The notes under the pieces are model-generated. The model had not been told where the DNA came from and did not search any database. It saw only the letters and a program-made list of their open reading frames with translations. From positions 220,777 to 284,776 of the IMG/VR virus record IMGVR_UViG_3300020084_000003: DNA of 64,000 bases; one strand, given 5' to 3'. Shown here in pieces: positions 45,750 through 61,205 of the stretch. The position numbers and the translations under genes were made by a program. The number at the start of each line of letters is the position of its first letter. The stretch's first letter is position 1.

Positions 45750-45835
45750 TGGCGGTTCAGGCAGGACTTGAACCTGCACCCTTTTCGGACACCGGGCTTT
45801 TTACCCGGCGATGGCTACCATTTCATCACCGAACC
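45750..45835 (-). tRNA. class II tRNA-like gene with a non-canonical loop (UAAAAAG)
   Basis: Leu-like D arm, variable arm, T arm, G73-CCA; CCGGG-TAAAAAG-CCCGG. Confidence 0.55.
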
Positions 45836-56533: not shown

Positions 56534-56610
56534 TGGTTGCGGTGGGTTGGATTTGCACCAACGACCTCTGGCATATGAAACCAGCAAGCTAACTACTGCT
56601 CTACCCCGCA
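56534..56610 (-). tRNA. tRNA-fMet-like (CAT)
   Basis: TGCGGGG-TAGAGCAG 5' end, CTGGT-TTCATAT-GCCAG, T loop TGCAAAT, bulged acceptor; lacks the three G-C initiator pairs. Confidence 0.75.
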
Positions 56611-56616
56611 AAATCT

Positions 56617-56829
56617 TTATTGATAAAAATTTGAAGATTGCATAATGAATATGATATCTTTGTTCTTGAAGGCACTACCTGTCATTAACAATTCTATCGC
56701 ATTTTCATCTGTCAACCCAAACAATGTCTTCAATTTTTCTTTGTTTGGAAGTTCTTCAAACACGCCCCTAATGGCAAAGTATTCTCTGTTGTTAACGGCA
56801 GTTTCGTATAAAACCCAAACAAATCTCAT
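56617..56829 (-). CDS. hypothetical protein
   Basis: RBS AGGAG. Confidence 0.55.
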   Translation of the reverse strand: MRFVWVLYETAVNNREYFAIRGVFEELPNKEKLKTLFGLTDENAIELLMTGSAFKNKDIIFIMQSSNFYQ

Positions 56830-56849
56830 GATATGCTCCTTTAAAATTA

Positions 56850-57079
56850 ATATGATGGTGTGCTGCTACGCCAAAGATTCTAAGGGTCTATTATGACATT
56901 GCTACCTATCATGTCCAAACTTTCGGTAGGTTAAATCTGAGGCTTCGCCCTCAAATCGTATCATAATAACTGCACTTATCCTTCCCCTACACGCCTAATG
57001 TGAAAATAGGACTTTTCACACGTATCATGTTCATCACTCATTATAAGATGGCTGCTCTTAGGCCGACTTCCCAACATAT
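56850..57079 (-). ncRNA. 23S rRNA L11-binding/GTPase-centre mimic with a 175-nt insertion
   Basis: GGAAGTCGGCCTAAGAGCAGCCATC ... GCGTAGCAGCACAC, closed by ATATGTTGG/CCATCATAT. Confidence 0.75.
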
Positions 57080-57083
57080 ATTC

Positions 57084-57239
57084 TTACTTTGATATAAAAC
57101 GATAAGGTGGAATTAAACCAAAGAGTTTCCACGTTCAGATTACCGCATCAGTCGGGTCCGAACCTCTTCTTTACCCATTCACAACGCTGGAAATTCTGTG
57201 TGAGTTGCATACAATCAGCATCGTTTTATATCAAAGTAA
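57084..57239. repeat. 156-bp element with perfect 20-bp terminal inverted repeats
   Basis: TTACTTTGATATAAAACGAT (57084-57103) / ATCGTTTTATATCAAAGTAA (57220-57239). Confidence 0.8.
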
Positions 57240-57380
57240 ATTACCTTTTAACAATCTTCTCGATTGAAGTGGTTAACTGCACCGCAATCTATGATTCGCT
57301 TATACCATTTATATAATAATATTGATCCGTCGAACAATATTGACACAAACCGTCGAATGTGCTAGGTATTGATAATCATA

Positions 57381-57451
57381 TGCTCAATTGGATTCGAACC
57401 AATGTCTCCTACTTCTCACGTAGGCGCATTCTTCCAGTATGCGATCTTGCA
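57381..57451 (-). pseudogene. degenerate class I tRNA with GAG anticodon
   Basis: CCTAC-GTGAGAA-GTAGG, D and T arms present, acceptor mismatched, no CCA. Confidence 0.5.
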
Positions 57452-57771: not shown

Positions 57772-58194
57772 ATGAAATACACTAGATGGACCAAAGAAAT
57801 GTTAGAACCAATTGTTGCATCTTCAATGTCTTATGCAGAATGTTTGCGTAAGATGGATAGAAAACCCGTAGGATCAAACTACAAAAACTTACAAAAGAAC
57901 ATCAAAAAGTTTGGACTAGATACATCACACATGCTTCACCAAGCTTGGAACTCTGGGAGAGAATTTAAAGCACTAGATGAATTGATAGGAACCACACAAA
58001 TAAAGAAAAGAATTGTTAAAGAGATGGGACATAAATGCTCTAGTTGTAATCTAACAGAATGGAAGGGAAAGCCCATACCTTTAGAATTAGAACACATAGA
58101 TGGCGATAACCAAAATAACTCTAGAGAAAATCTAACCTTATTATGTTGTAACTGTCATGCATTAACTCCAACTTGGCGCAGAAGGAATAAGTAA
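57772..58194 (+). CDS. HNH endonuclease
   Basis: CSSC..LELEHIDGDNQNNSRENLTLLCCNCH. Confidence 0.85.
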   Translation: MKYTRWTKEMLEPIVASSMSYAECLRKMDRKPVGSNYKNLQKNIKKFGLDTSHMLHQAWNSGREFKALDELIGTTQIKKRIVKEMGHKCSSCNLTEWKGKPIPLELEHIDGDNQNNSRENLTLLCCNCHALTPTWRRRNK

Positions 58195-61087: not shown

Positions 61088-61205
61088 CTCGGGCGGCAGG
61101 GTTCGAACCTGCGACCACCTGATTACTTTTGAAGCTTCCCGAATCGAACGGGTATTTACCTTTAGCTTCCACAGTCAGGCGCTCTACCAACTGAGCTACA
61201 CCCGA
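61088..61205 (-). tRNA. tRNA-Asn(GTT) interrupted by a 45-nt insert in the anticodon
   Basis: CCTGA-CTGT|45 nt|TAA-TCAGG; 118 nt = 73 + 45; G73; CCA not encoded. Confidence 0.8.

Follow-up and report, generated by a model that had tools for sequence, protein, structure and literature searches.

Phage-encoded RNAs resembling the GTPase-associated centre of 23S ribosomal RNA, found among phage tRNA genes

An RNA gene within a phage tRNA array

The window analysed here, the whole 64,000-nucleotide stretch of DNA, belongs to a large lake-water phage and carries 28 tRNA genes (ARAGORN, Rfam), all on the minus strand. Among them, and on the same strand, lies a gene for an RNA of about 233 nt that resembles the GTPase-associated centre (GAC) of 23S rRNA, where L11 and the translation GTPases dock. 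A covariance model and nhmmer profiles place the whole gene at 56848..57080. The covariance model (R1), built from eight other family members with the window sequence excluded, matches the window once, over the full length of the model (56852-57078, minus strand, 63.4 bits, E=5.5e-19), and nhmmer profiles made from 100 other members match the 5' half at E=1.7e-9 and the 3' half at E=4.8e-7. The element is present as a single copy in the 284,776-bp genome and is best regarded as a stable non-coding RNA gene. Five or more lake-water metagenome runs contain at least 0.91 of the words sampled from the locus, which makes an assembly chimera unlikely, with the proviso that one data set may be filed twice among them; none of the runs listed that carry the window sequence is an RNA sequencing run.

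A first-pass annotation of this DNA had read the locus as a phage mimic of the L11/thiostrepton domain, by comparison with an E. coli 23S sequence. The sequence used there is correct, being equal to positions 1051-1108 of the reference taken from NC_000913 rrlB. The reported 20/25 match to a 25-mer of helix 43 is found on the minus strand at 57071-57047 and is the single best in the 64-kb window, where 200 shuffles gave mostly 16-17 matches, and 19 once. The reported 11/14 match to a 14-mer of helix 44 is also present (56871-56858) but is not significant alone, as 4.35 such matches are expected per shuffled window; it derives its meaning from its position and from the family rather than from its score.

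Rfam searches of the whole window at gathering thresholds returned only tRNAs, in agreement with the earlier statement that no other rRNA is present, and searches of 56600-57400 at E-values up to 10 returned nothing relevant, with neither an LSU nor a ribosomal protein leader match; the element is thus not embedded in a full 23S rRNA gene. The local LSU-model match anticipated by the first-pass annotation is accordingly missing from the window copy, which is among the more diverged members of its family, but it does occur in the homologue from phage XacN1 (model positions 1095-1146, E=5e-4). The unconstrained minimum free energy fold of the element is no better than those of shuffled sequences (z=-1.0), and thermodynamics alone would have missed it.

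The nearest upstream tRNA gene is Leu-GAG (57380..57451, minus strand; ARAGORN, Rfam) and the nearest downstream is Met-CAU (56534..56610, minus strand; ARAGORN). Between the latter and the element lies a 70-aa ORF with a Shine-Dalgarno site (56617-56829), starting 18 nt downstream of the element; this ORF matches nothing in Pfam or PHROG and is not conserved beside other family members. A Shine-Dalgarno site and ATG this close behind the RNA would be consistent with a cis-acting leader controlling the ORF, as rRNA-mimicking leaders do in ribosomal protein operons; this explanation is highly improbable, as the genomic context of the relatives contradicts it. No domain is recognised in the ORF, and no protein family is conserved beside the element, the largest ORF cluster accounting for only 5 of the 128 listed loci. 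The next gene in most relatives is a tRNA, while the XacN1 element, which has its own promoter-like site, is followed by a terminator-like hairpin and U-run. Nor is there an Rfam match to any ribosomal protein leader. Assignment to a known leader class (L10_leader and the like) was rejected for want of such a match, with a domainless downstream ORF and a genome lacking uL10, uL11 and bL12. The phage genome also contains no detectable translational GTPase (EF-Tu-type) or RelA/SpoT homologue, so that a partner of the RNA would probably be host-encoded.

Association with tRNA genes extends to the family: a tRNA lies within 500 nt of the element in 72 of the 128 relatives listed, and all 452 tRNAs located no more than 2 kb from a listed element are on its strand, with none on the other. 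In the window a further structured RNA of 156 nt adjoins the element (57085-57240) and has one 11-mer match to 16S rRNA (E=0.13). Searches of the phage collection, the retrieved loci and the at least 120 viral-contig pattern matches listed gave no homologue of this RNA, and with that 11-mer as its only rRNA match it was not accepted as a second rRNA mimic.

Architecture of the RNA and covariation of its core

All parts of the window RNA described here are on the minus strand and are numbered by E. coli 23S positions. The RNA is enclosed by a stem whose 5' strand, equivalent to roughly the top of helix 42 (57071..57080, positions about 1046-1055), is complementary to the 3' strand at 56848..56858 (positions about 1104-1114) with one U.U mismatch; its pairing is supported by family covariation, and the non-rRNA closing stem of the first-pass annotation is thereby upheld. 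Within it lies a helix-43-like hairpin that includes the 1067 loop (57045..57069, positions 1057-1081), identified by E. coli identity and by retention of its pairs: A-U, A-U and G-C at 1057-1059/1079-1081 and GGC/GCC at 1062-1064/1074-1076. Anchor-based numbering shows that the rRNA linker 1082-1090 is retained (57036..57044), with an A1082-U1086 mini-hairpin, in which the U-A pair of rRNA is swapped, followed by G1087, A1088, G1089 and U1090. The helix-44-like hairpin and its 3' strand (56859..56871, positions 1091-1103), assigned by E. coli identity and the 3' profile, contain the G1091-C1100 and C1092-G1099 pairs, a GUAGCA loop and A1101, which is specific to the family.

A structured insert of 164 nt (56872..57035) separates positions 1090 and 1091, so that the 1087-1102 segment, uninterrupted in the compact 58-nt domain, is divided in the window. 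The earlier description of a 175-nt insertion replacing an 11-nt linker must therefore be revised, as the linker is kept and the insert falls inside the 5' strand of helix 44. The insert is delimited by its class in relatives, by RNAalifold and by a constrained fold, and opens with a basal helix (57033-57035 with 56876-56878). Inward from this helix are a hairpin domain (56989-57030), an AGGG/CCCU helix (56985-56988 with 56883-56886), a conserved purine-rich joiner (56971-56984), a long stem (56961-56970 with 56888-56896) and two further hairpins (56938-56953 and 56902-56929), and a UUUG linker (56872-56875) ends the insert.

At least 128 distinct relatives were collected in three pattern scans of viral contigs. 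These members were extracted by search patterns and a linker filter, which themselves fix several apparently invariant positions and so deprive these of independent weight: the linker filter demanded A1088 and a search pattern A1095, while U1060 and G1059 were fixed by no scan pattern or extraction filter. Cultured phages bearing the element include XacN1, GAP32, CBB, BF, pf16, RSP15 and ME3, among others, and in the GenBank records of at least 15 cultured phages it is left blank or overlaid by a "hypothetical protein". Full-length alignments at 81-100% identity join 14 records of the GAP32/CBB/BF group, which the Yersinia fHe-Yen9 phages match only in part, at 76%. Members occur in phages whose hosts span Proteobacteria, Firmicutes and many other phyla. 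A search of 185,579 species genomes gave about 20 copies, versus at least 118 loci in each of two viral-contig scans; the family is enriched in phages. Rfam 15 has no model for it, our literature searches found no description of a phage mimic of the GAC or of any rRNA domain, and a 2026 review of jumbo-phage biology nowhere mentions rRNA. As far as the literature searched extends, these RNAs would thus appear to be a widespread and previously undescribed phage RNA family.

Anchor-based counts provide the primary covariation evidence; the covariance-model alignment (A4) is secondary because it mishandles members with long inserts, giving split or short matches. Across the variable rRNA pairs and the closing stem, 90.2% of cells are paired, compared with 68.1% in shuffles (reached in 0 of 500) and 30-47% when the partner is slid. 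The closing stem (1048-1053/1106-1111) is 76-89% canonical across the family and uses all four Watson-Crick types, with a canonical fraction of 0.85 in register, a shuffled mean of about 0.40 and 0.32-0.40 with the partner slid by 1-2. Pairs 1057-1081, 1058-1080 (UA46/GC45/AU23/CG8) and 1082-1086 (UA60/CG40/AU19; 93% canonical versus 54% shuffled) covary. In the sample anchored on the 3' side only, G1059, U1060 and C1072 never vary, and the 5'-anchored sample shows the helix-44 motif GCGUA-NN-AGCACAC, in which A1101, a U in rRNA, is nearly universal. The loops are held less tightly than in rRNA: A1067 is A in 84-92% of members and otherwise G, the loop tips at 1067-1070 differ in 8-21% of the family, and 1096/1097 are free to change. 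The window carries U1060 and A1088, the compensatory A-U at 1082-1086, G1071/C1072, and, in the two loops, A1067 with A1095, bases at which thiostrepton and factors make contact, as well as the full family signature of the U1090-A1101 pair, an insert at 1090/1091 that opens with a helix and ends in UUUG, and a variable closing stem.

The comparative evidence shows membership of a large phage family whose core has the secondary structure and fold-determining bases of the GAC (helices 43 and 44), with a closing stem of its own and a single fixed site at which a variable structured domain is inserted. The first-pass identification of a mimic of the L11/thiostrepton domain is thus strongly supported by the number of relatives, the three covarying rRNA pairs, the invariant U1060 and the R1 match. 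The divergence of the window copy and the lack of an LSU-model match to it might otherwise have suggested a functionless relic or artefact, whether a degenerating remnant of 23S rDNA captured from a host or a chimeric assembly. The covariation data already refute this, and we give it next to no credence: compensatory changes maintain all of the stems, derived features (U1090-A1101, the insert site, UUUG) are common to all members, the 14 records of the GAP32/CBB/BF group align along their full length, and the locus recurs in several metagenome runs.

The variable insert and candidate functions

Every member of the family possesses an insert, which is highly variable (45-534 nt) and divides into several classes, each marked by conserved motifs of its own. 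That of the window belongs to a class found in about 12 lineages, including XacN1, CBB, GAP32 and BF, and RNAalifold applied to alignment A2 returned 40 pairs, 23 of them with compensatory changes. At the junction, insert position 1 pairs with position -5 and position 2 with -6 across the family, the base counts of the partners agreeing, and the insert ends in UUUG in over 90% of members. About 14% of members carry a second hairpin inserted at 1076-1079. Group I or II introns and rRNA intervening sequences were rejected as the source of the insert, given the lack of an Rfam intron match, insert lengths down to 45 nt and the lack of a flanking rRNA gene.

An insert that is always there, with its own motifs in each class and a conserved junction (helix and UUUG), could be the working part of the RNA, with a function dependent on its class and with the GAC module serving as a handle or scaffold that stabilises the RNA or recruits an abundant protein. 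We consider this unlikely. A handle would not need near-identity to rRNA in exposed loops across phages of Proteobacteria, Firmicutes and many other phyla, and the sole identifiable insert module is itself another element of the rRNA factor site. The inserts of eight relatives contain, inside a covarying stem, a sarcin-ricin core of 12-13 nt that matches E. coli 2653-2665 exactly or almost exactly; four matches of at least 11/12 were seen, and none in shuffles. RNAs of this subclass thus imitate the factor-binding site in both of its rRNA halves. The insert of the window has no match of 9/12 or better to the core AGUACGA(G/A)AGGA and has a different small hairpin at the homologous position. 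When all inserts were compared with E. coli 16S, 23S and 5S rRNA by BLAST, the sole recurrent match beyond the sarcin-ricin core was a short GGUAAGG motif, which we do not regard as rRNA mimicry.

The GAC and the sarcin-ricin loop (SRL) are the two rRNA contacts of the translation factors (PMC2330231), and the RNA might accordingly bind a translational GTPase (EF-G, EF-Tu, IF2 or RF3) or RelA and so modulate it or shield it from host attack; members with both elements exist. Isolated oligonucleotides of the SRL and the thiostrepton domain bind EF-G and IF2 (PMC3496166 and references 31-32 therein). The affinities reported for such isolated pieces are weak, however, and sequestration of an elongation factor would harm phage translation, an odd outcome alongside tRNA co-expression. 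The SRL is also absent from most members, including that of the window, and factor binding as the main role seems quite unlikely.

Another candidate is a sponge that would bind free or exchangeable uL11, possibly together with uL10-bL12. Ribosomes poor in L11 would then fail to activate RelA, giving a "relaxed" cell in which phage products continue to be made despite uncharged tRNAs. As the selected function of the RNA, we regard this as possible but doubtful. The isolated 58-nt domain of helices 43 and 44 folds autonomously and binds L11 (PMC4409310), and the L11 stalk participates in RelA activation (PMC4974054, PMC5829649). U1060 and G1059 are kept even though the search patterns left them free, the rRNA pairs covary, and L11 depends more on the fold than on the loop tips for recognition, in keeping with the mild variation at 1067-1070; the phage itself lacks an L11 gene. 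On the other hand, a sponge would have to compete against tens of thousands of ribosomes, stripping of L11 would also slow the elongation that the phage needs, and the uL10 determinants of helix 42 are not conserved, as the closing stem is variable in sequence. It would also leave unexplained the universal insert and, in some members, the SRL, which L11 does not bind. The relatives with a sarcin-ricin core speak for mimicry of the entire factor-binding site rather than for an L11 sponge alone, and uL11 binding is likely to be an accompanying property of the RNA.

We tentatively prefer a trans-acting decoy of the ribosomal factor-binding site that would compete for a host protein, a reading to which we give somewhat less than an even chance. 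As gene order implies, the RNA would be transcribed together with the phage tRNAs, and it would probably be cut from the precursor by tRNA-processing enzymes, since tRNAs adjoin the closing stem at 4-31 nt in many relatives. Conservation and the autonomy of the 58-nt rRNA domain point to a GAC tertiary fold off the ribosome, in which form the RNA would compete with host ribosomes for a host protein recognising the factor-binding site, and translation would thereby be kept running for the phage. The lead candidate partners would be toxins from defence or competition systems that inactivate ribosomes by attacking helix 44 or the SRL. We know of no anti-phage system that targets the GAC. Among interbacterial toxins, Tre23 ADP-ribosylates helix 44 at 1095-1098 (PMC8661411) and SRLase1 cleaves the SRL (bioRxiv 10.64898/2026.09.18.752725), and the specificity of sarcin and ricin is retained on SRL oligonucleotides (PMC3496166 and references 31-32 therein). 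Weighing against the decoy, a stoichiometric competitor would do little about a catalytic toxin unless it bound as an inhibitor; moreover, the window copy has no sarcin-ricin core and the loop tips are looser than in rRNA. The possibilities named in the first-pass annotation, namely that the RNA may titrate L11/L10 or RelA or may lure toxins that target rRNA, are the right candidates.

More generally, and with a likelihood not far short of even, the family may represent a portable "ribosome in pieces", in which replicas of the factor site co-expressed with tRNAs would divert ribosome-directed toxins, sensors or factors. Its carriers would, equally tentatively, be phages and some tRNA-array-bearing elements in bacterial genomes, and the replica might comprise the GAC alone in most members and the GAC and SRL on one molecule in the subclass. 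If so, rRNA mimicry would define a new class of viral counter-defence. To our knowledge, a GAC-mimic RNA would be the first natural virus copy of a functional rRNA domain as a free RNA. Should the comparative evidence stand, these phage non-coding RNAs would be a large family of wide phylogenetic reach that has escaped annotation, with a bearing on what phages supply besides tRNAs to keep or bend host translation, and on the ribosomal factor-binding site as a phage-host battleground, as tRNA anticodon loops are. It also bears on the in vivo response of L11, RelA, elongation factors and ribotoxins to a free-standing GAC (and GAC plus SRL) RNA. The matter is directly testable, as cultured phages with laboratory hosts carry the element. 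Natural variation in the inserts, at the second insertion site and in the loops provides a ready mutational data set for the GAC fold.

Comparison with known systems

A comparison of the phage RNAs with the GAC of 23S rRNA (helices 42-44, E. coli 1051-1108) shows extensive agreement. Both possess the helix-43 and helix-44 hairpins, the 1082-1086 pair, U1060/A1088, G1071/C1072, A1067/A1095 and a G.A or A.A juxtaposition at 1056/1103, and some relatives are identical to E. coli 1055-1088 at 34/34 positions. In contrast to the rRNA domain, the family lies outside rRNA genes, has its own variable closing stem and looser loop tips, and contains a U1090-A1101 pair where rRNA reads GCUCAC. It also always has the 45-534-nt domain and UUUG at 1090/1091, with the second hairpin at 1076-1079 in about 14% of members. 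Leaders of ribosomal protein operons, such as the L10 leader (RF00557), likewise imitate an rRNA protein-binding site and bind the protein off the ribosome. These leaders are cis-acting mRNA of cellular operons and resemble the rRNA site loosely, whereas the phage element is free-standing, located in tRNA arrays with no ribosomal protein gene near, and nearly identical to rRNA.

The closest laboratory counterparts are the synthetic "ribosome-in-pieces" oligonucleotides (Munishkin & Wool 1997, in PMC3496166), which copy the same two rRNA elements and bind EF-G, IF2, L11, thiostrepton and ribotoxins in vitro. Unlike these constructs, the phage copies are natural, under selection and, in the subclass, joined on one RNA. 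Like the tRNA arrays that phages deploy against tRNA-targeting defences, the element would be a stable phage RNA standing in for a host RNA, and it shares the location and strand of the tRNAs; like the ToxI mimic of PhiTE (PMC3475682), it would be a phage RNA imitating an RNA component in a conflict over translation. It differs from both in that the imitated molecule is an rRNA domain, and its counter-defence role is one that we hypothesise here. The ROOL and GOLLD phage RNAs (PMC12286853) are also structured non-coding RNAs of unknown function that often lie near tRNAs. They have no sequence or Rfam model match to the element in searches at gathering thresholds or by E-value, and they are larger, RNA-only cages without rRNA mimicry.

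The window element and its relatives

The element lies on the minus strand at 56848-57080, within a 28-gene minus-strand tRNA array of a virus whose record, originating from lake-water metagenomes, comprises 284,776 bp with 38% G+C and 32 tRNAs; tail-fibre genes elsewhere in the window indicate a tailed phage. The E. coli helix 43/44 sequence given in the first-pass annotation is identical to rrlB 1051-1108. Of the two segments it aligned to the GTPase-associated centre (GAC) of 23S rRNA, the H43-like 25-mer (57071-57047, 20/25 positions shared with E. coli) is the top match in the window, where 200 shuffles reached at most 19. The H44-like 14-mer (56871-56858) does agree at 11/14 positions, a match that taken alone is at chance level (4.35 expected). 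As had also been stated, no further rRNA was detected in the window by Rfam search, while the LSU matches anticipated for the element itself were absent even at E up to 10. Plain minimum free energy folding of the element is unremarkable against shuffles (z=-1.0). The window sequence by itself would have left the case for a GAC mimic open; it is the relatives that settle the question.

Covariance model R1, built from eight short-insert members (alignment A3), has one match in the window at 56852-57078 (minus strand), at full model length with 63.4 bits and E=5.5e-19, and profiles from 100 members of other insert classes match the two halves with E=1.7e-9 and 4.8e-7. The window copy is a member of the family, and no second copy was found in the phage genome. 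It differs from E. coli at C1061, C1065, A1068, G1069 and by a swap at A1082-U1086, all of which fall inside family variation. The reading of the element as a GAC mimic has good support. The proposal that 175 nt replace the rRNA linker needs revision: the linker is kept at 57036-57044, and the insert is 164 nt long (56872-57035).

Covariation, the inserted domain and the sarcin-ricin loop

All members were numbered on E. coli 23S rRNA via three sequence anchors; positions fixed by the search patterns, which depending on the scan include much of 1062-1064, 1071-1076, 1083-1085, 1087-1095 and 1099-1102, do not represent independent conservation. The closing stem (1048-1055/1104-1111) is 76-98% canonical, with all four Watson-Crick types in its outer six pairs; pairing is 85% in register, about 40% with partners shuffled, and 32-40% when slid by 1-2 positions. 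The H43 pairs covary like those of real rRNAs, with pair 1057-1081 occurring as AU (106) or CG (16) and pair 1058-1080 as UA (46), GC (45), AU (23) or CG (8). The mini-pair 1082-1086 also covaries (UA 60, CG 40, AU 19), the juxtaposition 1056/1103 is kept as G.A or A.A, and U1060, G1059 and C1072 are invariant, including in the sample anchored solely on the 3' motif. The R1 alignment of 112 model matches counts as secondary evidence, having been fitted to the model and dealing poorly with long inserts; in it 90.2% of cells are paired versus 68.1% when shuffled (0/500 shuffles reach the observed value), falling to 30-47% with partners slid, and both partners vary in 18 of 20 pairs.

The family departs from 23S rRNA in having a constant A1101 facing U1090, where rRNA has U at 1101, and in always carrying an inserted domain of 45-534 nt between U1090 and G1091. 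This domain starts with a helix in which insert positions 1 and 2 pair with -5 and -6, respectively, their base counts agreeing, and ends in UUUG in more than 90% of members; about 14% have a second hairpin inserted at 1076-1079. The insert class of the window copy, also found in phages XacN1, CBB, GAP32 and BF and in several uncultured huge phages, has the conserved segments GGGGAAG(G/A)A and GACCCUUAGAG. Its helices are supported by RNAalifold, which finds 23 of 40 pairs with compensatory changes, and a constrained fold of the window copy is consistent with them. In another large class (27 members, e.g., at loci L022, L040, L049 and L063), GCACCCCG and GGUAAGG(C) recur as shared motifs close to the insert 3' end, neither with a convincing match to rRNA.

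Screening all inserts against E. coli rRNA and the 12-nt core of the sarcin-ricin loop (SRL) picked out long-insert members at loci L017, L044, L082, L103 and L167 (identical to L188), and a dedicated SRL scan added L259, L260 (identical to L262) and L261. Each of them contains AGUACGA(G/A)AGGA or a sequence close to it, with up to 13/13 identity to E. coli 2653-2665. Core matches of at least 11/12 occur four times among 127 inserts and never in shuffles. The SRL (helix 95) core always lies within a hairpin and is flanked there by a covarying stem; the surrounding scaffold shares homology with the window-type insert, and in the alignment the SRL hairpin takes the place of a small, different hairpin of the window class. 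The insert of the window copy lacks the core. Two SRL-bearing loci also encode phage tmRNAs beside tRNAs (L103, 1997-2348, plus strand, Rfam 140 bits; L167, 8163-8535, minus strand, 100 bits). In these relatives the GAC and SRL thus occur on one RNA. Together they make up the rRNA portion of the factor-binding centre (PMC2330231), so the family seems to be built around imitating that centre.

Distribution and genomic context

Sensitive BLAST of the window element against GenBank phages returned one partial homologue, in Xanthomonas jumbo phage XacN1. Its 5' part shares 30/31 positions with E. coli 1059-1089 and is followed by an insert of about 170 nt, an H44-like hairpin and the closing stem; this 5' part also gives an Rfam match to bacterial LSU (model positions 1095-1146, E=5e-4). 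On the upstream side a promoter-like site ends 11-15 nt short of the element, which is immediately followed by a G+C-rich hairpin with a U-run. IMG/VR pattern scans with three queries (3' motif, window-type insert motif and 5' motif) together yielded at least 128 distinct elements. BLAST of family members against GenBank phages located cultured carriers: Aeromonas phage 4_4572; Pseudomonas phages pf16, Milchi, Astolliot and UNO-G1W1; Cronobacter GAP32, Pectobacterium CBB and Serratia BF; Erwinia pEa_SNUABM_12 and relatives, and Kaldavass; Yersinia fHe-Yen9; Xanthomonas XacN1, XbC2 and XaC1; Vibrio 2.275.O, Ralstonia RSP15, Acinetobacter ME3 and Paenibacillus Pd_22F. In every one of these records the element region is unannotated or overlaid by a "hypothetical protein". 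Such coding sequences in Kaldavass (PQ464595.1, 96403-96653) and Milchi (PQ464597.1, 79151-79192) are probably mis-annotations.

A scan of prokaryotes (one genome per species, 185,579 species) gave only 24 matches, of which four are genuine 23S genes and about 20 are phage-type elements, mostly on tRNA-rich MAG contigs from many phyla. One member (L244) lies in the complete chromosome of Acidithiobacillus sp. M4-SHS-6 (NZ_CP175559.1) within an 8-kb stretch holding 38 tRNA genes, so the element also travels with the tRNA arrays of integrated elements, beyond free phage genomes.

A tRNA lies within 500 nt of 72 of the 128 elements and within 2 kb of 83, and all 452 tRNAs within 2 kb share the element's strand. 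At about 30 elements the closing stem is preceded by a tRNA that ends 4-31 nt away, and at about 30 it is followed by one that starts 6-27 nt after it. No neighbouring protein family recurs, the largest cluster covering five loci. This context opposes a cis-regulatory leader and favours a stable RNA that acts in trans and is freed by the enzymes of tRNA processing. In the window, tRNA-Leu lies 300 nt upstream and a 70-aa ORF, in which no known domain was found, begins 18 nt downstream; since no convincing promoter or terminator flanks the element, it is probably part of the tRNA transcript.

Directly upstream is a second RNA-like element of 156 nt (57085-57240, minus strand), with a perfect closing stem of about 20 bp and a fold that outscores shuffles by a wide margin (z=-5.07). 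No Rfam match was obtained, and no homologues were found in GenBank phages, the family loci or the 120 viral-contig pattern matches listed. Neither an 11-mer equal to E. coli 16S 952-962 (E=0.13) nor an 8-mer equal to the 530-loop is significant; its predicted long duplex resembles a processing stem of the RNase III type. Between it and tRNA-Leu, the direct repeat TTCGACGG (57327-57334 and 57350-57357, minus strand, 23 nt apart), present three times in the window versus 0.56 expected, may be a phage regulatory or promoter motif. The array also contains an HNH homing-endonuclease ORF on the opposite strand (57772-58194, plus; PHROG 10822, E=7e-40). Elsewhere, a tRNA gene at 61088-61205 (minus; Rfam 59 bits, no ARAGORN call) carries about 45 extra nt in its anticodon loop, fewer than a group I intron would need. 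The ARAGORN calls include an 86-nt tRNA-Phe whose anticodon, AAA, is unusual (45750-45835, minus) and four tRNA-Met(CAT) genes, some of which may be Ile (lysidine) or initiator species.

Candidate targets and known systems

The family represents an RNA gene that is conserved, structured and enriched in phages, has the secondary structure and core bases of the GAC, and shares its orientation with tRNAs. Its RNA would act as an off-ribosome decoy of the factor-binding site. The phage genome has no detectable homologues of uL11, uL10, bL12, EF-type GTPases or RelA/SpoT, which makes a host-encoded partner probable. On its own, the 58-nt H43/H44 domain is able to fold and to bind L11, with A1067/A1095 as the thiopeptide site (PMC4409310); capture of uL11, leading to relaxed control, ranks second of four readings, and we consider it rather unlikely. 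EF-G and IF2 are bound by isolated oligonucleotides of the SRL and of the thiostrepton domain, and those of the SRL are still specific substrates for sarcin and ricin (PMC3496166 and references 31-32 in it); RelA activation involves the L11 stalk (PMC4974054, PMC5829649). Translational GTPases or RelA themselves rank fourth as targets, the least probable choice, just behind another role with the insert as the working part, a doubtful third.

Ranked first, as a tentative preference, are ribosome-directed toxins or effectors. Among bacterial conflict toxins, Tre23 attacks helix 44 at 1095-1098 (PMC8661411) and SRLase1 attacks the SRL, using EF-Tu (bioRxiv 10.64898/2026.09.18.752725). A toxin target fits both the SRL-bearing relatives and the co-location with tRNAs. 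Phage tRNAs are thought to offset attacks on the translation apparatus. Three points weaken the toxin reading: decoys protect poorly against enzymes, the SRL is missing from the window copy, and we know of no anti-phage system that targets the GAC.

Rfam 15 holds no model recognising the element apart from partial LSU matches. No account of it was found in the openly accessible full-text literature, and the text of a 2026 jumbo-phage review does not mention rRNA. As a concept, rRNA mimicry has precedents in r-protein operon leaders and synthetic "ribosome-in-pieces" oligonucleotides. To our knowledge, no virus has been described that carries a trans-acting and nearly exact copy of a functional domain of rRNA.
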